From Auanema rhodensis (taxonomy: Eukaryota; Animalia; Nematoda), in NCBI GenBank assembly GCA_964057225.1, contig OZ059896.1, positions 17,360,001 to 17,424,000 of the forward strand: a stretch of 64,000 nucleotides of DNA. The letters run 5' to 3'. The translations under genes and the position numbers were made by a program. The notes under the pieces are model-generated. The model was given only the letters and a program-made list of their open reading frames with translations. It was not told the origin of the DNA and did not search any database. This document shows positions 8,448 through 42,090 of this stretch, one piece after another (positions within the stretch are counted from its first letter, which is position 1; every line of letters begins with the position of its first letter).

Positions 8448-9582
8448 ATGGAGCCTTCGGTTATCAAAGATGTTCAAAAAGTTATGGCAAGCGTGATTCT
8501 GTTGGGTGTATTCTTTGGTGGACTAGGAAATGTTATGATTATCTATATGATTTTGACAAGAAAGAAACTACAAACAAAGTCGGGTACGTTGATCAGAAAA
8601 AAGTAAAATAGTCGAAAAATATGTAGCAGATATGTTTATAGGTGTATATATATGTTTTTAGGAATTTTGCTGGCAATTACAGCTTCGTGTCATTTGTTGT
8701 GTCTTATATCAGAAATTGTTCATGCCGTTTATATCTTTCTTGATTCCACAATAGACGGAGAATTTTGTTTCAAAATGCTTCTGCCCTATGTATTTTGCTC
8801 AATATTGCAATTTGGAATGTACTTAGCAATGATTACGGATCTATTGCTAGCAACTGTTAAGCCTATTTGGTATAATCGGGCTAACACTCGGAATTTCGTA
8901 TTTTACTGTGCATCTCCTGCATTCATGTTCGCAACCATTGCCACTGTTTTTAGCGTGAAATACCATGAAGATGTAGAGATACCAGAATGTAATCCAATCG
9001 TCGGTACATAATTCATCTAAAAAAACATAGTATTACTGATAATTGAATTATAGTTTTAAAACCATTTTTTGCACAAACACTTGTTACTTCATCTATTGGA
9101 TTGAATACATTAACGCTGATGGCATATATAACAACTATTTCTGTATTTTATCTAAGTACTTTCTTCTTTCTAGCAGATATCAAAATATAGATTCAGGAAG
9201 ATCAAAAACATCATCTCAAACTAAACAAGTTATGAAACGACTAAGCGTGATGGCTCTTGTATTCATACTAACGGGTTACGCAAATATGCTTGGAGCCACA
9301 TTGTTGTATCTAGTGATGGACGTGGATAAAGCAACAATGCAATTCATGCAATCAACTCTGGTAATAATTTACCTCGTTTTCTATTAATAATTAAATATTT
9401 ATAACTACATCTTATAGGTAGTTTTTGCAATTCTCAATTTTTCGCAAAATTTTTACGTCACTATCTGGAGATCTACAATGTATCGAAATGCCTTCAGTGA
9501 GATCGCTTTAGAAAACAACATTATTCCGTGCATAGCTACTCATTACAAACAACGGAAATTGATTCAATCGCAACAATTGTAA
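8448..9582 (+). CDS. Srsx-family serpentine (7TM GPCR) chemoreceptor, copy 2, 5 exons
   Basis: MEPSVIKD...GGLGNVMIIYMILTRKKLQTKS|GILLAITASCHLLCLISE...MITDLLLATVKPIWY...IPECNP...KQVMKRLSV...FSQNFYVTIWRSTMYRNAF matches Srsx signature motifs; GT-AG introns. Confidence 0.88.
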
Positions 9583-12500
9583 CATGATCATAATACATCA
9601 TACAACTCTAAATATTTATAGAAATCTAATACAAAAGCCTAATAATTCATACTCCACTGCTGTTAGCTGAACATGATCTAGCCAGATACCATCAATTAGA
9701 CAACATTTTATAATTCTATAGGAATAACGAAAAAGTAATATGATGGAATGAGAATACAGGATTTACCAATAATATCGGTACAACTCAAGAAAATCGATAA
9801 TCATTTAAAGCTCAAGAAAATCGATAATCGTTGTCGGTAATATTCAAATTAGAAAATATGACCAATTACTATGATTACAAAATTCAAATTCTGTAAACAC
9901 CTCACAGTTTTAGAAATGTTGTTAATTTATTTAATCCGAACTGTTTATTACTCTACATCACTGAAATCTTTGTCCCATATTTTAACTATTTGATTATTTC
10001 ATGTTTTGTTTTTAATAAAAAGAAAAGTTTTTGATAAATGAAGTTATTATCAAACTCTGTTATTTATAGCTGTAAATTTATCTGGAAGAATAACAGTTAC
10101 CGTCCAGTGAACATCATTCACATTTCTATTGGCATCACCAAGAAGAACAGTAACACAATTTCACAGTTGGAATACTATTACTAATTACTATTATATTTGA
10201 AAATAAGTTTCATCGGTATATGTACCTGTCATATTTACATTAATTCAAGATACATATATGTACCAGTTAATTATGATGAATATTTTATTAATATAGTGTT
10301 TGTATTATTATCAGTAAAATAACAATATAATTTCTTGAATAAACTCCAACAATAAAATGATCAATATTGCTATTATGCTAATTTTAAATGTTAAAAAACA
10401 AATATGCCTGAAAGTTGCCTTGATCCGTATGAATTTCAAAGATCAGCTTTTTTATGTTTACAAAACAATATACATAGATGCTAATAATGCATAAAACTTA
10501 AAATTTTTTTGTATCATCTTAATTCGCTATAAAGCTATTGTTATATAATATTACTCGAAATATTATCAATACCACTTTATATGTACTCTAATTACCATTC
10601 AAAAACCATATATACTAATAGCCGAAAGAGTATATTTTATTTAAATTTATGTTGAATGATCATTGTTTTATATTTTAATATGATATATGTTCTAGCATAC
10701 CCTAGCTTAATATTAAAATAAGTGAAGTATAGAAATAATTTACCTAGCATCCATCAAACCCGGAAATAACATATTCTTTATTTTAAGAATAACACATGAA
10801 ATAATTTGTTCGAAATTTTGAAGAAAAGATTCTTATTGATTGTAATTGATATTTATTTGAATCAAACTTTTGCGTGTATAGTGAGTAAGTATAAATAAAC
10901 TAAAATTGGGGAAACCTGTTATTTCTCATCAATCTTAAGAAATATTCAATGAATGAGACAAACCCGACGTTGGATTACATCGAATATGCCTGGTAGCATG
11001 GCTTGATATAATTTAGTAATCGACAATTACTTCACTGATTTTATTCGTATTTCAAATCCATAAGTGAGTATTTCCTAATTGAATGTTTAACTCTTATAGA
11101 ATAGTGAAGTGTAAAATCACAATTACTCCTTATATCCGGATTTTAATGAAAAATATATAATAGTTTCAAAGTAAATAGTTATGCAATAATACTTTTATAA
11201 AATAGTTTGAATGGCTCTTCTTTATATTACTTTTACATTTTATGAGTATTGAGCTGGTCATAAGTCACATCACCACTAATTTTGAATTACTGTAAGCTAT
11301 TAAATGGGGGGTAGGTAATGTAAAAAGGGCCATTTTAATGGTTTTAGTACTATTTCAAGAATATTGATACGAATGCAATGTTTTTGAAATACTGAAGCTT
11401 AAAAACCTGGCAAGAGTACAACATAGATTTATCCTTTATATAGAGTATCATTATTGAAAAGTGTAATAATTTATAAATATTATTTCAACAGTTTTTATAA
11501 TATTAGGCTTAATTTTTGTTATAAAAGTAAAATGAGACAGGCGTCCCGTATTCAAACATATGGATGTATAATATATTGATCATTTATATATTACAGTTTT
11601 TTTTCATTTGTTACATTTTATTTTAAATTCATACACGATGTCAAACCATGATCCATGTTTTCCAATCAATGTTTCCTGATCTACCCAGTTGCAGTTGAAA
11701 AGTTGAGTTTATAAGAGAAGTAGAAGTTTAGTTAATCATCATCATGGGATAACGACAAGAACATTTTCAAAATTGTTCTAACATGATAGTTGGCATGGGA
11801 AACATTCACGTCTCTCATATTAAATCAGAAAAAGATTGTTACTATTTTTAAGTTTCTTAATTATCTAGTCATACACATTACAAACAAATACAAAGTTGCT
11901 CTGCTACCGCTCACAATATTTTGTCGTTTACGCAACTATTATTCTATTACAAACCTATCGTAATCGTAATTAAGAATTTATCAATAGTTTTCTAAAGTCT
12001 CTGCTCTTGTAAATTGAAGGAAATAGCTTTTATCTATTTTTTTAATTCAAAATACTATTGACACACCTTTCCAATTTAAAAGACCAATGAGATACAGTGT
12101 ACAAATCATTGGGGACTCATATATATTTCAATTAATTTTTTCTGTCGTTGACAGCTGATTAAGTGAGTTTTGGCTAATGATTTCATATGAAAGAGGAAAA
12201 AAACTATTTAATCGTTTATGATCGTCGTCATCTTTTTCTTCCCTTCGTGGTTAAAATCAGAGCTATTAGACAAATCAGAACAATAAGCTCAGGAACGTTG
12301 GAGAAAAACGGGAATTATGTTTTCTAAAAAGTTCTCTTTGAATATTTTTATTTGTTGAGAATACTCCGTTTGAAAAATACCAGCTAAACTCTGTTCCTGA
12401 TATTTTAACGTTGATTAAGTTAAGTTAAGTTATAGATTTGAATGTAAGCTCCAAAGTGATTTTTAAAACATTTCTTTTTATTAAAAACAAAACATGAAAT

Positions 12501-14842
12501 AATCAAATAGTTAAAATATGGGACAAAGATTTCAGTCATGTAGAGTAATAAACAGTTCGGATTAAATAAATTAACAACATTTCTAAAACTGTGAGGTATT
12601 TACAGAATTTGAATTTTGTAATCATAGTAATTGGTCATATTTTCTAATTTGAATATTACCGACAACGATTATCGATTTTCTTGAGCTTTAAATGATTATC
12701 TATGTGACAACGATCTCAATTAAGGGAAGGAATTTTTAATTGTTTTTAAGTGTGTTCGGTTGTTTAGAGGTTTTTTATTATATTATTTCCGTGTTGTGTA
12801 TGAGTTAGCTTTATGCTAAGTGCTAGCAATTGTAGTTTTTGTATCTATAAATCATAGTTTCCTTTGAACGAGTGTTTAGAAAAATTATTAGCTCTAAAGG
12901 TAAAAGCGGACCTTTTTGAGGAATACTCTGTAAAGAACCGTATAAGCACACATTACCAGTTTAATTATCAGAATAGAAACAACACAATATCTCACGAATT
13001 TGCATGAAAACTTACTTTTGTTGTTTTAAAACATTATTTTTGTTCAAAAAATCACAAATAAATCGAGACAAATGTAGAAAGTTATGCATATGAAATTAAA
13101 AAAAAAGCTGTCAATACGTTATGGAAAATTCTCAATAATATAGATTCATGAAGCAAAATCGTCGCACGAAATTTTTTTCTCAAATACGTAGTCATTGTAA
13201 TCTTATTTCTATATGAATTAAGATTATTATATTATTATAATCATCTTCATTATATATTTCAATAAATAATTTTATTAGTCTTTTTCACTGATTTTGATTT
13301 TCATCTCTTGTAAATTCTGAGTTTCTTTGAAGGAATTTTTTGGCCTATATGCAAGAAATTTGCACTACAGCTAAAAAATTAATTTTTTTTTAATTAATTG
13401 AAAGTAAAATTTAAAAAACAAGTTAAAAATCCGTATACTATCACTAAACATCAATAAATTATTCAACATGATTTGTAAAATATTCCAATGAACCGGAAAT
13501 TCAAAGAAATTTTTTATTTTATTTTTTAAACGAACATTTGTGACATTTTTTCTCAAATCATTAATCCCCTACTACAACCGGTTAAGTATATTCACTAAAA
13601 TTATAGGAAATACTGCCCCAAAAAATTCTATTTTACCTAATATAAACAAAATAGCACATAAATGGAGGATACAAGACGTATCGACTATTGCTAAGAAGTT
13701 TAATCCGTTGTTTAGAAAAAAAACTAGAAACAGATGATGAGTATAAGAAGTATACGATGTAATTGTACGTATATTGCATACGAATAAATAATTTTTTCAT
13801 ATTAAATAACATAAAAAGTATTCAATGAATATAAGAAAGATGAAAAAGATAAAACATCCTGCTTATTCTGTATGTATAGTTTCTCTAACTGTTTTTCTTA
13901 TATTGCACTTAGTACATGATGATGTTGAGCATTTTCTTCTAAATATTATATGTAAATTAGTGACTTGAACAAGGAATATATAATATTTGAAATATTTTAT
14001 GTATAGACACATCATGTATATAGTTTACTATTATAGAGTTGCCTATAATTTTGGCTAAATGACATACTGAATGTTAATGTTAAAAATAAAAATAGCTAAC
14101 TAAACTTTTATTTTTGTTATTTGGGACGTTTATTATTTAGACAAGTTTTGCGTGCTGTAATTATGAAATTTGAGTATTAATTTTCATTAATGTTTTACAA
14201 GTTCTAAGTTATATGACACAATTTTTTTTAGAATATATATATTCTAAAAATATATATATATATAAAGAAGCATAGCTCAAACTCTTCTTCCGCTTTTCTT
14301 TTTTTCTCATTGAAAAGGAAAATAGAAGAGAATAGAGAACTTTTTTAAATTTATGTATCACTCAGAACATTGTGTGTGTTGAATTTCAAATTAAATAATT
14401 AAACGGATGATTGAATAGAATATATTTTGATGAATTAACTTCTAATTTCTTTGTGATAATTCTTGTCCTGTGCATATATATTTCATATATAATGTGTTCT
14501 TGCTCATATTTTAAGATTAGCAGCATTAACTTTCAAATAATTCTTCATGCTTTTCACCTACAAATGTGTATTTTTTTGATTTTTAATCGTATGAACAGAA
14601 GAAAAAGAATCAAATAGTTGAAATAGTTTATTATTCTTCAGTTTTTGTTTTGTTTTGTATAACAATAGAATTGATTAAGTGTTTTTTATATTGTCTAATT
14701 GTATTCTAATCCCTTTGAAACAATATTGTCTAATTGTATTCTAACCCTCTAATACAAACTTTTCTAGATTTTTAACTATTTATTAATGTTTATATAAGAA
14801 TTCGTTAACTTATGATAAATATTATATTTCAAATTATAGCAG

Positions 14843-33900: not shown

Positions 33901-35391
33901 TTTTTCTCAAAAAATGTTTCTCAATTTATCTCACTTTTCTTTCTTTCTTCTTCTCCTTCAGCTTTCTATTTCTCTCATATTCTTACTCTATCTAGCATTA
34001 TTGCATTCGTTGTCTTCTTTTTCTTTTAACTTCATCTTTTCGTTAGAGCAAACCGCATGGCATGATTCCGATGCTGAGGCTGTCTACCTCAAGACGGATA
34101 AATGAAAGCGATGCTGCTCTCCAACACTATCTGAAGCATGCTGCTGCTCAACTTCTCGACATTTTACAAAAAAAATTTTTCTTCAACACACTCGCACACA
34201 CAGTGAGAAATGGGATACATGGCGCTCAAACAGAGTCGTTTTTGCAACCCAATTGCCCTTGGGGTCAATGTGCAAAAGAAATAAAAAAAAGGATCAGTAC
34301 CTATATTCCTTTAACTTTTTATTTTCTTACATCCATTAACTATTTTGTCTTTTCTTCCTCATTTTTGTTCCTTTTTTTCTTTCTTATACTTGCTAGTGTG
34401 TATGTGTGTTCATACAATAGTCATTTATTTTAATTCCGGCATGTTCTATCTTGCCATCATTATATAAATATTTTAAAACTTCCTAGACAGGATTTAGTGG
34501 GACACAAGGTCTCCCAGAAAACGAAAAAGAGCTGCAAAAGATTTATATAGAAAGAGCAAAAGATAGAGAGAGAGAGAGAGACTGAGGAAATAAAAAAGAC
34601 AACCAAGTGAGAGTGGGAGCTTCAGACGATAGTTATTGCTTCAAAGTGCACATGCTTTCAGCATCTGTCTTTCCAAACTGCTTTCTGCCATTCCCCCACC
34701 CAGCTTTTTCACTGACTTTCTACTTCGAAAATCTAATCTATTAATTCCAATTTTCAATTTTTTTTATTTGGAGCATATGCAGATTTGCTGACTTGTTGTC
34801 GTCATGTTATTAGCTCAGATATCGATGCCAACCAGGTGCTATTTGTATGAAAACTGAATTGTGCTCATCGTTGAGTTGATCCAAAGTTAAAGTGCTTTTC
34901 AAACCCCCGATCAGTCCAGGCTGCTAGACCTTTTCGATTCGAACAGCTCCGTGGAGTAGGCTTTACCTGTTCAATGATTCTCTTCCAGCTATTTGCTTAG
35001 TTACCACAGACCATACTCTTCTTCTTTCTTTCGTCTTCTTCATTATTCTCGTCATCTCAGCTCTGTGACTTTCATGTTGTTCCATTTATATTTATAATAT
35101 TTTATAATATGATAATTTTAATATTTATTCTTCGTAACAAGTAAGATAATCTTAATGTTTCTATTCGAATCTCAAAAATATATTCGATTCGCAACAATTG
35201 TTTAACATCAACTTCATGAGTTATGACATTTGACAGGTGTGACGAAGCATTTTTCTTGATTCTATTACATGAATGACAAACTGAAATTTTTTTTAATCTC
35301 TTGTTTCGTTTATTTTATTCATTTCTTGTCTTATTTTTGATTTTTATATATTATTAGAAGTATTCATTTCATTTAATCCATTTATTTCAGA

Positions 35392-38300
35392 ATGTCCGTT
35401 GCGAAGAGGGGTAGATCAGCCAGCTTAACACCAGCATCGGAATGCTGCTACGTTTGTACTGAATGCCCAAGTTCATTCTCATCATTGAATGAGCTTGAAA
35501 AGCACTTAATGAATCATAATAAGACATCTGTAGACATTGAAGAGGTAAGCATATTATTGGAATTTCTCTTTCATATCACCCATTGGAATGTATATTTTCG
35601 TTTCTTATCTTGCGCAGTTCAAATGCTCTTTTTTAACTATTCATCTGAATTAATTATCTAAAAAAGCAGATTATGATATTGGTGAATGATGATCGGAGTA
35701 TCCAATGGTCTTCCGGTCACACAGCTGTCTTTCTTTTCTTCCAATTGCTATTATGCAGAATGAGAGATAGTGAGATATCATAAGAGTGGAGCGAAAGAGA
35801 ACAGGAATGGGATCTTGATTGAAAGCCAAAGAAGAGATAGAGCAGCCGCCACCAATCACCAAAAGTTTTTCTGTCCCATGTAGTTCTAGCAGACGTAGAT
35901 AGAGAGAAAGGAAGAATAGGAGATAAAAAGAAATTCCGAGCTCGGAGAGGAAGTGACTAGTAGCCGATGGCACGAGGTCATCTCTGGCACGACTCCTCTT
36001 CACTTGGCATCGTTTTTCAGTTTTTTTTCGGACAAATAGGGTTTAAGATTGTCGATTTACCTTTTTTTTTTCGTCGTTTGGCTCATTAATGGACAGTTCA
36101 CTGCGCATAGAATATCGGTCAATCTGTCATAGAGTGTCTGTGAACCGTTTTTGTCATCTACCGTAATCCGAGTAAAGTTGATTGAGAGCGAAAGAGATGA
36201 GCTGGCAAATACAAATTCATGACAATTCGCGTTGTTGAAGCCTACGATATCCTTACGATTTGTGGCCAGCTGACCAGTAAGAACGAATGATGACGCGATT
36301 GTGGTCGTCTGTATACGATTGGCATTCTTTGTAGTACAGGAACAGCCGGTCCATATCTAATCATCTCAAACTTCTACCTCCAGCTGACGTTTCCAAAGAA
36401 ATATGGTAGCCTCAGCTGTTGGCTACACGAATGGTCGCAGTACGGAGATGGAGTGCTTGGTTGAACGAAAACCCATATTCTTTAGCATATTGACATTCGA
36501 TCAGAAATCATAACCATATCTATCAAAAATAATTAATTTATATTCAATTGACTGTTTTCTAGGAGCCTGACCTATTAGCTAACAACTACTTCAACACTCA
36601 TAGCCCAAGTAGTTCGGAATCTGCTCGTGGTGGAGATGATGAAGTGACACAAGACGTCGATATGGAAGATAGTATGATAGACCTGAAGCCCGGATACCAC
36701 TGCAGATTCTGCGATCAATCGTTCGATGATCAAAGCCAACTTAATGTACACTATACTCATACTCACCGTGATAAGCCACAGTACGAATGCGAAGTATGTC
36801 ATACTGTATTCGGCGTTAAACGTGATTTATCAACTCACATGAGGAAACACAGCGGAGAACAGCCTCATAAGGTATGTCAATCACATTGCAACTTGTATAG
36901 TTATCAATCATATGTGTTTCAGTGCACTCAATGCGGAAAGGAATTCGGTACTCGTCAATTGCTGAAAAAGCATTGGTTGTGGCATACTGGTGAACGAACT
37001 CACGTGTGCCAGCATTGTAACAAAGCTTTCTACCAGGTTTGTCACATTTTTATTTGAAGATCCTTTTTTCATATTTTTTTCTGAGTACCATTCATTAGTT
37101 TTACGTTTTATAGAAAGGACACCTGACCCAACACTTGATGATCCATTCTGGCGGTCGACCTCATAAATGCGAACTCTGCAAAAAGACATTTATCTTCAAA
37201 GTAAGATTGCTTTTTTCATTTCTTCTTCTATATTTTTAATTTTAATGTCTTTGGCATATGCTCTTAATGCTTACTTCTATTTCAGTTCGATCTTAACCGA
37301 CACATGAAGATTCATGCTGAACGTGGATTCTCATGCACTCAATGTGGACGATCATTCCAACGTCAGAGTTCCTTAGATGAACATCTTATGAAATGCAAGG
37401 GAAAGACTGCAGCAGTTCGGTCTTCACCTATCCGAACTACCTCTAGCGCTTCTACAGCTTCTTTGGCTGAAGTTGCAGCAGCTGCTGCCAGCACAACTCC
37501 AACAATGACGCTCAACACATCCACAAATCAGTCATCTCTTTTCCCACTTCTGAATCAATCTGTTCTTAACTTCACCACTGATCAGATGGCCAAAATGGCT
37601 CAAAGCTTGCTCGCTCAGCAGAACCAGCAAAGAGTTCTGAATGCTCTTTTCTTATCAGCCTCCAATGTGTCTACTACTCCAAGCTTGACGACTACTACAA
37701 CGTCATCTCCAGCTGCTCCAACTGCCACGACGACAGACTATACTATCTCACCAACAAACAGCACACAGCCTGTTACTCCAGATCCAACACCATTCTATTG
37801 TATGCTGTGTAGCAAGCAATTCCCCAATCAGCAAATTTTTGCACTTCACATGTATACTGCTCACGTCCAAACGAGCTCCGCATACAAAGACGATCTTGAG
37901 GTAATGTTAGAGATTATACTAATGAAATTCTAATCTTCTTCTTTAGAATACTACCCCACTTCTTGTATCTTCTCTATTTGGTCCAGTGAATCCAATCAAG
38001 ACTGAGGATGAAGAGCAAATGATAAATGTACACAGCGAGACAGCTACCAACTCATCTTGCGCCTCAAGGTATGTAAACCCTAGTTTTATACAGAGTTATA
38101 ATCAATACTTTTTTTCAGCCCTCTTAAAGCTTCCCCTGTATCATCTCACTCACCGGCTCCGTTCATGGTTGCTTCTCCTTTGTCTCCCAAGAAATTAGCT
38201 CTTGAAGACCTCAAGCATGATGAGCCATGTGCTGACTGCGACATGCACAAGACTCGAACAGAAGAGCTTGAAAACGCTCTGCGACAGAAGGCCGACGAGC

Positions 38301-38493
38301 TTCAGAAGTACAAAGACATGATGAAAGCTGTAAGTTCATATAAATGTTAGACATCATGCTAATATTCAATTCGTTACAGGTTGTAACCACAGCTGGTCAG
38401 CTCTTGAACCAATGCTCAACCGAAAATGTTTTCATTGCCCACACAAAGAACATTTTCAATCAACTTCAGTCCACGCTGCTGACTTCCGAGTAG
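35392..38493 (+). CDS. Multi-C2H2 zinc-finger transcription factor (8 fingers, S/T/Q-rich linker, C-terminal CxxC + coiled coil)
   Basis: One N-terminal finger, a tandem array of six with HSGEQP/HTGERT/HSGGRP linkers (last one C2HC), one isolated finger (FYCMLCSKQF...HMYTAH), and PCADC...coiled coil. First intron 35545-36562; ATG preceded by a tttcag acceptor. From memory it resembles C. elegans M03D4.4 (unverified). Confidence 0.93.
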
Positions 38494-39095
38494 TATCGTT
38501 GTTATATTTCAAAGTTTGCGTGTATAGTTCCGGCAAATGGTACCGGAGCCAAGACCCGGGTGGTGACGTGTAATACAAGCCAGAACAGAATCTGGAATCA
38601 GAAGTTGCCAAATTAATACTATTAACTATTCTCTACGAATGATCTTTTACTATATTTTTTCCTTTTACGATAGATATTTCGGTTCAATCTCCCTCCCACC
38701 CTCACGTTCTTTCCATATATTGTCACATCAATAATCTGAGCCAAATAGGTGAATCATCTATTCAGATACGTCTAATTCCGTTTTAGGAAACGATATATTT
38801 TGTTTTTTTTTCTTGTTTTCAACTTGTTTCTCATTTGATTTCCTTAAAACAGCTGAATTTTCATCAGCTACATTCAATTCCAAACATACGTGCTCAAATT
38901 TAAGACATTCATGTATTCCGAAAACAATGCTCTCAAGTTTGAAACATAAGTTTATTTTCCATTAAAAGCTTTAGTTTGTCAGTCGCCCATCAATCTCTCA
39001 CTTAAACTTATAAGACGATTTGTTTTTTTTCTTGAGAAAGCTGTTTAGTTGGTGAAAATAATTAGCAAAAAAGAGAGATCAAACAACTGCCTCAA

Positions 39096-39115
39096 CATTC
39101 ACCTTACGTGCCTTA
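39096..39115 (+). promoter_or_regulatory. Extensively paired miR-124 target site in putative 3' UTR
   Basis: CATTCACC-TTA-CGTGCCTTA versus the reverse complement of miR-124 (TGGCATTCACC-G-CGTGCCTTA); pairs miRNA nt 1-9 and 11-18. Confidence 0.75.
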
Positions 39116-42090
39116 TTTGTACAGTTCATGTGTTGTATACGACTGATATCTTTTGTTTTTATAATATTTTGTAGAAGAAAATATCATTTCTTCATCTTCT
39201 CATCCTAATTAGGTACACATTTTATTATTTTTTAATTATATAAACAATATACATTTATATTGAATTATCAATAATATGTATATGTTTATCACAAAATCTT
39301 TGCCTTATTTATCTGTGTTCGGAGTGCCTTTTTGGAAGCCTATATTCTCTAATATATATATATATTTATTATTATTATTATTATTTCGTTTATATATTGT
39401 CTAGAAACACATATTTATTTTATTATATCAATAGATAATCTCAAATTCTAGTTATTTCTTATTTTCTCTATGCCACTCCTCTACTCCCACCCTCCCCTTA
39501 TATATCCAGAAGCATAGTTTTCAAATTGGCCTCAATCAGTCTGAATGTGAATCTGGTCATGAGCTGATATGTTATTATTTCTCAAAAAACAAAAGAAAAC
39601 ATTGAAGCTATTTCTCCTTTTAAATACAATGAATGTGTTTCATTTTTTTGCCTTTTTATTTATCCATTTTTTTACGAAGAACCAATATGATTACATGTTC
39701 AGAAGCTACGGACATTCTTGTTGAGTATTAAAATATTTTATCAATTAAATATTCAATTATTTCAATTATATTATATGTAATAAATATCAATTATTAATAC
39801 GTTTTCTCTATTTATTTTTCTGATATAATCCAATGAAACAATCGCACATTAGATACATGTAAGCGTACATAGTAACATGCGGGAACTATGAGCTTTAATG
39901 ATAAACAGGCTTTTTAATGTTTAATAATGAATAATTCATTAAAGTCAGTTTTGATCAGCATATCAACATCATCATAAACATATATCTTATCATATCATAT
40001 CAGAATAATTAAATAAGTAAATATAGTAATTTGATGTCGTGGAGTATCCTTTTTCTTTCCGAAATCTTGATTGATCTTTTCATTCGTTTCGATGTATATG
40101 TGTATGTGTGCGCTCGTGACAAATGCTTGTTTTCTTCAGTATGAACTTCATGCGAGAGAAGGACAACAGAAAAGGGTAAACACCTGTATGAACTTCCGCA
40201 CGGAACTCTAAAAAAAAGCACAAATAGAGACAGTCAAGCCACATATAAACGTCTATCTTTCCTTTTCTCTTTATACACTTTCTGATTCTTTTCAGTAGTT
40301 GTGTTGTATTGAGGTAAATGTGGACGTTGATTGTTGAATCAAGAATTTGTCGTCGTCGAGCAATAGGCGTAAAGGCTTGAAAGACCTAATCTCAATCCGT
40401 ACACATTAGATTTACTTTCTCTTATTTTCACGATTAAAAAAAAACAAATCAATTCAACTGTAATGCAAAATTTGCTAAGAAAACTCAAATTTACACTTGT
40501 TGGATTGTTGGTTTTGTATCAATCTTAGTCTATGAAACTATTCATGATATTCTAAAACAAATATCTTTTAAAAATCTCAAATTGCAATCATGTGCTAAAA
40601 CATTTTGAAACTTTAAGATATCACAATAAGATATCACAATAAATAGATGTCAAAAAATTAAAGACTGATGTGAAAGAGAAGTTCAAAAGTCAGATAAGTT
40701 TACCATTGGACAGTGGTGGTTGTTGTTGTTACAAGATGATTTCTCTCACGACTTTTGTTTCGAAATTGTTTCAGTTTGTTGAAAATGATAAAGAACAGCA
40801 AGTTACTTCTCTTGACCAGCTTTCTCAAACACTTCATCAACTTAAATGACTACTACGGCGGCAGGAATCAGATGATTTAACAATGACCAATAGTCTTTTA
40901 AGAATTATATACTGCATCAGCTAGTATTATACATGTTTGTACGTATATCAAAATATCTGAAATACAATTTCTTAGTCATTCTCTGATTTTGCCCTTGCTC
41001 TTCCGCTCTCAACATCAAATGCAAAACCTGATGCCCGATAATTCCTACTTTTGCTGTATGTCTGTTGTTGTTTTCAGCTACGATGCCTGGACACTGCTGT
41101 CACAGCGTGATATTTGGAAAAGCAATTTGACCTATCATCATCAGATGAAGAAGCATAAGTCTGGCGATATCGTTCAGACTTTTGTCTCCTATCCCACTCA
41201 GCTTCCTTCACTACAGATCGTCACAAGTTCAAGATATTAAGACAGACGTGCCTTGTAGAATAATAGGATATTAAGCTCTGTTACAGATCACCCATAGTTA
41301 TATTCAAATGAACGAGCCACCAGAGACTGCCATACAACGGTCGTCTCTCTTCTTCTTCACCATCTTCTTCGTCTCAGGCTTATTACTATTATCTCCTTCT
41401 CTACCATCTACATCGTTTTCCTGCTTCCTCATCTTCGCTCTCATTCAACATCATTATATTTAAGAGCACATTGCTGCCATATTACAACGTGTGCGTGCCG
41501 GCACACGGTCAGGGTCATTGTGACTCCGTTGTGAGCTATGTCCGGTGCCAGTCACGGTAGTGCATCGTCACTTTTTATAATGTTTCTATCTCTTCTTCAA
41601 CTCATTCAAGTCATATAATCTAGTTTCAAGCCATTCATATTGACCAGCTTGTCGTTTAGGAGATGAAATGAATGATGAAGAAGAACTCTAAGTATTGCTC
41701 AATATGATATTGTAGATTGAGAGAATTCCGAGCATAAGAAGACAAAGTAAAGAAAAAAGTTTGAGAATGTGTGAATATTGAAGGGCACAAAGCACAAACT
41801 TTATCTTGTATTTCATAAAATAAGAACAAAACCAAATCTTTCTAACCAATTTTAGTTTTTAAAAAAATTGTAGATAAAAGCTTTTTTGATGATTAATGTC
41901 ATGTGACGCGAGAAAGTACGTGTAACATATCATGTGAAAACTTATAGACGTAACGGATTTTTCTTTTTTTTTTAACAAAGCTCTTAGAGAGCGGATGGTA
42001 TTTGAAAAGATGAATAGCGATAATTACTACTACTAGAAATGAATCAACCAGAAAATTTTATTATAAAGATAGCATGATATGCAATAGAAT

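Follow-up and report, generated by a model that had tools for sequence, protein, structure and literature searches.

A probable ancient miR-124 target site with extended 3′ pairing in the 3′UTR of the M03D4.4 orthologue of Auanema rhodensis

The window analyzed here, a 64,000-nt stretch of the genome of the nematode Auanema rhodensis, carries on its plus strand a gene of eight exons coding for a C2H2 zinc-finger transcription factor, as indicated by matches to the Pfam zf-C2H2 domain (Table 1). The spliced product is 574 aa long, and protein searches with exon 5 and with a C. angaria fragment show that the gene is orthologous to M03D4.4 of C. elegans. In that species, the M03D4.4 protein is reported to be a pan-muscle transcription factor, found in 94% of muscle cells and almost confined to muscle, and the gene shows synthetic lethality with hlh-1, unc-120 and hnd-1. 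In the retrieved papers that mention M03D4.4, it is not discussed as a target of miR-124.

All seven introns are skipped at GT..AG borders in contigs of the only four runs found to carry this DNA (X1-X4, all from one 2019 study), and these contig sets are therefore derived from RNA. Starting at 38380, the contigs run unbroken to 39720-39747. The 3′UTR therefore covers the sequence at 39096-39115, for which the initial annotation had proposed a miR-124 site and asked that its inclusion in the transcript be confirmed. PAS-like hexamers (ATTAAA at 39727 and 39744, AATAAA at 39779) suggest that the true end of the 3′UTR lies at about 39750-39800. One more ATTAAA is found at 38961, upstream of the site, and could give rise to a shorter isoform devoid of it; contigs cannot show poly(A) sites.

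Table 1. Features of the M03D4.4 locus in the A. rhodensis window, and position of miR-124 seed matches downstream of orthologous stop codons in other nematodes.
Feature	Position	Strand	Remarks
Coding region, M03D4.4 orthologue	35392-38493	+	exons read from sequence, introns RNA-confirmed
Exons 1-4	35392-35544, 36563-36871, 36923-37036, 37114-37200	+	
Exons 5-8	37286-37900, 37947-38068, 38119-38329, 38380-38493	+	stop codon TAG at 38491-38493
3′UTR	38494-39747	+	minimum of ~1254 nt, from contigs
CATTCACC	39096-39103	+	3′-pairing block, complement of miR-124 nt 18-11
TTA	39104-39106	+	opposite the single miR-124 nt C10; 1x3 loop, offset +2 (RNAduplex structure)
CGTGCCTTA	39107-39115	+	complement of miR-124 nt 9-1; includes the 8mer seed match
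GTGCCTTA	39108-39115	+	perfect 8mer seed match, sense strand of the 3′UTR
TGTACAGT	39118-39125	+	conserved flank; candidate non-canonical Pumilio (PUF) element
TGCCTTA, second miR-124 site (7mer-A1)	39301-39307	+	kept in Auanema sp. JU1783
GTGCCTT, third miR-124 site (7mer-m8)	39324-39330	+	kept in Auanema sp. JU1783; 23 nt after the second
GTGCCTT, C. elegans	+250 after stop		
GTGCCTT, C. briggsae	+213 after stop		
GTGCCTT, C. angaria	+135 after stop		
GTGCCTT, Diploscapter pachys	+287 after stop		
Five seed matches (four GTGCCTT), Mesorhabditis spiculigera	~+920 to +1105 after stop		
GTGCCTT, Haemonchus contortus	+831, +867 after stop		
GTGCCTT, Ancylostoma ceylanicum	+483, +518 after stop		
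GTGCCTT, Pristionchus fissidentatus	+360 after stop		
GTGCCTT, Steinernema carpocapsae	+144 after stop		clade IV

The plus strand reads CATTCACCTTACGTGCCTTA at 39096-39115, that is CATTCACC-TTA-CGTGCCTTA, starting 603 nt 3′ of the stop TAG. Aligned to the reference guide miR-124 (UAAGGCACGCGGUGAAUGCCA), the two blocks pair with nt 1-9 and nt 11-18, and the near-complementary, bulged site described by the initial annotation at about 600 nt after the stop is thus recovered in all its parts. Nt 19-21 of the guide are left unpaired, as the CAA lying just upstream of the site cannot pair with them. RNAduplex returns the same 1x3-loop structure, with an energy of -26.0 kcal/mol for the site/miR-124 duplex versus -41.3 for a perfect complement. 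The region around the site folds no better than shuffled sequence, in keeping with an accessible site. Concerning the guide itself, the exact 21-mer appears in published work on small RNAs of the strongylid Angiostrongylus, as well as in flatworm, insect and fish papers, and a published table comparing seven nematodes lists the mir-124 family for each of them; we assume that Auanema has the same guide and expresses it.

A mir-124 precursor gene was rejected at this position, in agreement with the initial annotation, and so was any other structured RNA. No hairpin was found on either strand, both folding worse than shuffles (z of +1.63 for the minus strand and of +0.96 for the other), Rfam gave no mir-124 match either at the gathering threshold or at E<=1, and no mir-124 locus is present within the 64-kb window. 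On the minus strand, the miR-124 sequence would contain an insertion of 2 nt. We also considered a stem that would close the site, AACTG...CAGTT, and dropped it, as it is not kept in the related species Auanema sp. JU1783.

Could such complementarity be a chance resemblance without function? The 8mer GTGCCTTA occurs only once in the window when both strands are scanned, and base composition predicts ~1.2 such 8mers per window (2 x 64 kb), i.e. about one per 128 kb. An 8mer with an additional 8-nt 3′ block has a much lower expectation, of ~9e-4 per window (allowing for 6 registers x 13 offsets). The statement that 17 pairs are unlikely to arise by chance therefore holds locally, but not over a whole genome and ~100 miRNA families, where the probability is not negligible and a few matches combining a seed and 8 nt could arise. 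It is conservation, and not the number of pairs, that speaks decisively against chance.

The closest orthologue retrieved comes from Auanema sp. JU1783, which is clearly a different species, its coding DNA being ~70% identical to that of the window and its exon 5 protein 66% identical. In the 3′UTR, only five short islands retain 20-mers that differ at no more than one position, and the UTR flanking the site is unalignable. A 33-nt island at 39095-39127 (ACATTCACCTT[A/C]CGTGCCTTATTTGTACAGTT) holds the miR-124 site, and its sole change, an A in the window and a C in JU1783 at 39106, falls inside the loop. The second and third miR-124 sites both lie within an island at 39297-39333 that is 89% identical to the JU1783 stretch 9580-9616; the 3′ pairing of the third site is weak and rich in wobbles. 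An island near the end of the 3′UTR (39685-39787) is also kept. Elsewhere in the locus, a block at 40112-40241 (87% identical over its aligned part) and a block of intron 1 (35660-35931) are kept in JU1783 as well.

We extended the comparison to ten rhabditine UTR stretches (C. elegans, C. briggsae, C. angaria, Diploscapter, the two Auanema, Mesorhabditis, Haemonchus, Ancylostoma and Pristionchus), those of other species being genomic sequence 3′ of annotated stops, with assumed limits. Together with Steinernema and Enterobius, this makes twelve orthologous downstream regions, and GTGCCTT is present in eleven of them (all ten rhabditines plus Steinernema). The exception is Enterobius vermicularis (clade III), with no GTGCCTT within 3 kb after the stop. 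As a control, we found that three out of 6139 distinct 7-mers are common to 10/10 rhabditine stretches, namely GTGCCTT, ATTTTTT and TATTTAT, making GTGCCTT the sole one that is not of low complexity. In Mesorhabditis, the five seed matches are packed within 190 nt.

The 3′ pairing block has a narrower distribution. The full CATTCACC is found unchanged in Auanema sp. JU1783 and in Diploscapter pachys, in the latter 12 nt from the 8mer, which places the pairing of nt 11-18 at an offset of ~+10. H. contortus and A. ceylanicum have ATTCAC (nt 17-12) 3 nt from the seed match, with a 3x3 loop and an offset of 0. Caenorhabditis, Pristionchus and Steinernema have the seed match only, the 3′ block being absent. 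The loop therefore measures 3 nt in Auanema, 3x3 in strongylids and 12 nt in Diploscapter, and its geometry is not conserved among genera, while nt 19-21, which lie opposite CAA, ACA or ATT depending on the lineage, are unpaired in all three lineages with a 3′ block. The initial annotation had suggested looking in orthologues for two kept blocks separated by a variable bulge, and this is the pattern observed, both between the two Auanema species and in Diploscapter and the strongylids. On sequence comparison, the 3′ pairing block is old, like the seed match. A block that survives between two species in UTRs that cannot otherwise be aligned, and that has changed solely within the loop, together with a 7-mer recurring in nearly all orthologous regions, makes a fortuitous origin very improbable. 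The site has the features of a conserved canonical one: a perfect seed match within the UTR, retention of the seed match in orthologues, and 3′-supplementary pairing.

The arrangement of the 3′ pairing can be compared with the affinities of AGO2-miR-124 measured by McGeary et al. (2022; PMC8940178), where 3′ pairing that includes nt 11 (G11-G12) is preferred, with an optimal offset >+2. The same preference is shared by let-7a and was named the ‘positive-offset binding mode’, as distinct from a ‘zero-offset’ mode starting at nt 12. Moreover, lengthening the pairing of miR-124 from nt 13-18 to nt 13-20 changed affinity 0.9-fold, i.e. brought no gain (PMC8940178). The Auanema geometry, with pairing of nt 11-18, an offset of +2 and a stop at nt 18, is close to these measured preferences, and the strongylid version (nt 12-17, offset 0) is a textbook zero-offset site. 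One orthologous site is thus found in both binding modes. Selection for affinity offers the simplest reading.

We know of no seed paralogues of miR-124 in nematodes, and for this reason affinity is a more probable purpose of the 3′ pairing than discrimination among paralogues. The part of the initial annotation that proposed a high-affinity site is therefore well in line with the published preferences of miR-124. Comparable sites are those of let-7 in lin-41 (LCS1/LCS2) and of lsy-6 in cog-1, likewise located in the 3′UTR of developmental regulators and likewise combining a seed, a small loop and 3′ pairing from nt 11; they are cited as natural positive-offset examples, with offsets of +1/+2 (PMC8940178). 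The Auanema site, known here from sequence, differs from them in that its seed match is a perfect 8mer, so that its 3′ pairing is supplementary and not compensatory.

Taken together, we consider, with a probability of roughly 0.8, that this is an ancient and selectively kept miR-124 target site in the 3′UTR of M03D4.4, a nematode pan-muscle C2H2 transcription factor. Very probably, it works as an ordinary repression site, if an unusually tight one, and not as a device for destroying the microRNA.

The latter possibility had been put forward in the initial annotation, which saw in the site a candidate trigger for target-directed miRNA degradation (TDMD), whereby miR-124 engaged on the extended site would recruit EBAX-1/ZSWIM8 to ALG-1/2 and be destroyed. 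Seed pairing and a central loop are indeed shared with TDMD triggers, and these are followed here by eight contiguous 3′ pairs in a strongly conserved site. Similarly, the pairs CYRANO-miR-7, NREP/libra-miR-29b and HSUR1-miR-27 have a seed, a central loop, a 3′ helix, and conservation of both site and flanks. However, in validated ZSWIM8 triggers pairing with the miRNA 3′ region is extensive and draws the 3′ end out of PAZ, whereas at the Auanema site the pairs end at nt 18 of 21, leaving the last three nucleotides free in every lineage with a 3′ block. In a reconstitution study of ZSWIM8, a target with 7 nt of 3′-supplementary pairing was bound ~100-fold less well than a trigger; the Auanema site has eight such pairs. 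In the same study, altering the length of the internal loop substantially lowered binding, yet loop lengths among genera range between 3 and 12 nt, and the specific and conserved loop geometry expected of triggers is lacking.

Conservation at the site extends further than the pairing, and ZSWIM8 binding is known to benefit from the RNA that flanks a trigger, which could be taken in favour of degradation. However, these flanks help without sequence specificity, and therefore do not explain a conserved flank motif. With regard to C. elegans, published work indicates that the 3′ region matters for how sensitive at least miR-43 is to EBAX-1, and proposes a ‘proximity model’ involving a cis element. 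On the other hand, miR-124 goes unmentioned in the main text of the study defining 22 EBAX-1-sensitive miRNAs in this species (Stubna 2025), and the C. elegans site is seed-only.

Finally, the transcript itself is an uneasy candidate. Transcription-factor mRNAs are usually rare, and the muscle specificity of the orthologue, a transcription factor, accords better with its being kept out of neurons than with a stoichiometric trigger operating inside them; its host transcript and the variable length of its loop also set the Auanema site apart from validated triggers. We consequently regard degradation of miR-124 by this site as very unlikely. The circuit of mutual destruction proposed for this mRNA and neuronal miR-124 is poorly supported, given the failure of 7-nt supplementary pairing to recruit ZSWIM8 in vitro and the muscle specificity of the orthologue, and the site gives no good evidence for a miR-124 TDMD circuit.

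The conserved flank deserves separate consideration. Conservation runs 11 nt past the region that can pair with miR-124, and part of the constraint must therefore have another cause. We found that TGTACAG starts exactly 10 nt 3′ of the first base of GTGCCTT in the two Auanema (as TGTACAGT) and in both strongylids (as TGTACAGA), leaving a 3-nt gap, and that it is the sole copy in each of these UTRs. Related strings are present in Mesorhabditis (TGTACACA), Diploscapter (TGTACGTA) and Steinernema (TGTGCAGT). We know of no miRNA whose seed would match UGUACAG. Cooperative elements joining Pumilio and a miRNA exist, such as those of p27 (PUM1 with miR-221/222) and hbl-1 (puf-9 with let-7), where a UGUA-core motif likewise lies beside a miRNA site in a 3′UTR. 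The Auanema motif differs from these in being a non-canonical UGUACAGU/A and not UGUANAUA, and no canonical UGUAHAUA is present in any of the UTRs. A preprint on RBPscan lists UGUACAGU and UGUACAGA among strong non-canonical motifs of vertebrate Pum1 that drive mRNA decay, and UGUACAGC in human CLDN5 binds PUM1/2. A composite miR-124 + PUF element is thus a reasonable reading, to which we would give perhaps one chance in three, the motifs having been reported for vertebrate Pum1 and binding by a nematode PUF being extrapolated from them.

It might even be asked if the block is kept mainly for such a factor, either a PUF protein on UGUACAGU or some other RNA-binding protein, the complementarity to miR-124 being secondary. 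The identical spacing of a single-copy TGTACAG in Auanema and strongylids, the reported activity of these motifs in decay, and the extension of conservation up to 39127 are all consistent with this idea. However, the seed match is far more widespread than the flank: Caenorhabditis, Pristionchus and Steinernema all have it, but lack TGTACAG or have it in altered form. Moreover, the upstream block matches nt 11-18 of miR-124 exactly in two genera despite their different loops, which a protein site would not predict. A primary role for another trans-factor appears therefore very improbable, and we retain miR-124 targeting as the main cause of conservation.

A second microRNA may also act on this UTR. 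The conserved island 39535-39567 contains CTGAATGTG-AA-TCTGGTCA (39541-39559), complementary to what we take to be the sequence of miR-44/45. The string used occurs exactly in the strongylid miRNA paper. The pairing includes a G:U wobble at seed nt 5, a mismatch of nt 9-10 and nine pairs over nt 11-19, with an RNAduplex energy of -25.3 kcal/mol. This site is kept, wobble included and with a variable central loop, in the two Auanema, Diploscapter, Haemonchus, Ancylostoma and Pristionchus, and the stretches of Caenorhabditis, Mesorhabditis and Steinernema lack it. Judging from its pairing, its architecture looks more TDMD-like, or 3′-compensatory, than that of the miR-124 site, and miR-44/45 are EBAX-1-sensitive in C. 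elegans late embryos.

In Auanema, the 3′UTR might even be a platform for miRNA decay as well as a repressed target: the old miR-124 site, lengthened to 17 pairs in this lineage, would use the fixed-spacing UGUACAGU flank as a cis element for an adaptor, in the manner of the ‘proximity model’, and/or the miR-44/45 site would be an EBAX-1 trigger. We hold such an arrangement to be very unlikely; if true, it would mean that a nematode mRNA contains a natural trigger with extended 3′ pairing. In the nematode EBAX-1 pathway, the lncRNA tts-2 is reportedly the trigger for decay of the miR-35 family. Another parallel is the candidate miR-43 site of emb-9 in C. elegans, which likewise lies in a nematode transcript and has extended complementarity.

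The presence of several sites also raises the question of a competing-RNA (sponge) function, with the UTR titrating miR-124 without destroying it. Three kept sites in Auanema and the tight cluster of Mesorhabditis might be read in this way, but the mRNA of a transcription factor would, on general grounds, hardly reach the abundance needed, the orthologue is expressed in muscle and not in neurons, and nothing sets titration apart from ordinary repression through multiple sites. We consider it very doubtful that the UTR works as a sponge.

Under the preferred reading of an ancient repression site, ALG-1/2 loaded with miR-124 would nucleate on the seed match, and a 3′ helix initiated at G11-G12 would then zip across the +2 offset in the ‘positive-offset’ mode. 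Such extended pairing would raise affinity and dwell time far above those of a seed-only site, and would ensure potency when the miRNA is low or the target high. According to established Argonaute biology, a guide left unpaired at nt 10 does not support slicing, and the loop would accordingly be expected to spare the transcript from cleavage. We infer that the main site, together with the two kept seed sites 190-215 nt downstream, would silence transcripts of the muscle factor in neurons expressing miR-124, as a fail-safe or a sharpening switch keeping a muscle-differentiation factor off in these cells. The UGUACAGU motif, at a fixed spacing 3′ of the seed match, would probably be bound by a second factor, possibly a PUF protein, acting with miR-124.

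In C. elegans, miR-124 is a miRNA of sensory neurons that represses co-expressed targets. Its repression of non-neuronal transcripts, there (Clark et al., 2010) and among the classic vertebrate targets, offers a parallel to what is proposed here, with a neuronal miRNA acting on a gene of another tissue.

If correct, this reading would establish a new link between neuronal miR-124 and a recently described pan-muscle transcription factor, extending over the nematodes of clade V and reaching clade IV. It would also provide an orthologous series for binding modes that have been defined mostly in vitro, from zero-offset pairing in strongylids to positive-offset pairing in Auanema, a long loop in Diploscapter, and loss of the 3′ block in Caenorhabditis. 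Both the UGUACAGU/A motif, with its fixed spacing, and the miR-44/45-type site nearby may in turn serve as leads on the cooperation of miRNAs with RNA-binding proteins and on TDMD triggers in nematodes.

Three contigs begin at 35385 (+ strand, 35385-35391) with a single mismatch to the genome. The genome reads TTTCAG at these contig starts, and the 3' end of SL1, TTTGAG, would produce exactly this one-mismatch start. The position of the contig starts, together with a mismatch that fits the SL1 3' end, suggests that the transcript is trans-spliced to SL1 at the AG two nucleotides upstream of the ATG.

Outside the coding sequence, comparison with Auanema sp. JU1783 revealed conserved segments in the first intron, in the 3'UTR and past the UTR end (see table). 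The intron 1 block shares 74% identity with the JU1783 intron, and may act as an enhancer or serve as an alternative first exon. The block past the UTR end is 87% identical over the aligned stretch. Within it, TTTTCTTCAG resembles a splice acceptor and GGTAAAC a splice donor, and the short core that they surround is 8 nt longer in one species than in the other. None of the four runs gave RNA coverage of this block, and an Rfam search with it returned no match.

Conserved features around the M03D4.4 orthologue (window coordinates unless stated)
Feature	Position	Strand	Remarks
Intron 1 block, about 270 nt	35660-35931	+	first intron of 1018 nt
UTR island shared with JU1783	38551-38574	+	about 60-80 nt past the stop; kept as 20-mers that differ at one position or none
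TGTACAGT/TGTACAGA flank motif	39118-39125; L002 (JU1783 locus) 9517-9524; strongylid loci L006 about 13205 and L007 about 12649	+ in window	
miR-44/45-complementary site	39541-39559	+	CTGAATGTG-AA-TCTGGTCA; M03D4.4-orthologue 3'UTR, as the miR-124 site
Conserved non-coding block, about 130 nt	40112-40241	+	roughly 370-500 nt past the UTR end

In Auanema and the strongylids, the TGTACAGT/TGTACAGA motif begins exactly 10 nt downstream of the first nucleotide of the miR-124 seed match, and agrees with non-canonical Pum1 motifs reported from RBPscan. In the Caenorhabditis M03D4.4 UTRs, a TGTATAAAAC string lies immediately 5' of a seed-only miR-124 site (C. elegans L008 about 10395-10425; C. briggsae L003 about 9650-9680), which places a UGUA-core motif on the opposite side of the site. 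The C. briggsae UTR also retains ATCACC about 21 nt upstream of the miR-124 site, possibly a vestige of the miR-124 3' block. The Mesorhabditis spiculigera orthologue is followed by a cluster of five miR-124 seed matches within about 190 nt (L005 about 14488-14680); three of these are 8mers, which lie 77 nt apart.

The site at 39541-39559 is complementary to miR-44/45. The pairing has a G:U wobble at seed nucleotide 5, mismatches at nucleotides 9-10, and nine pairs covering nucleotides 11-19 (-25.3 kcal/mol). A string identical to the miR-44/45 sequence used is present in PMC3970689. Among the orthologous stretches compared, the site, including its wobble, is kept in two Auanema, Diploscapter, Haemonchus, Ancylostoma and Pristionchus, and none was found in Caenorhabditis. 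In C. elegans late embryos, miR-44/45 are EBAX-1-sensitive. The miR-44/45 site is a stronger candidate for target-directed miRNA degradation, or for 3'-compensatory targeting, than the miR-124 site proposed as a degradation trigger in the initial annotation.
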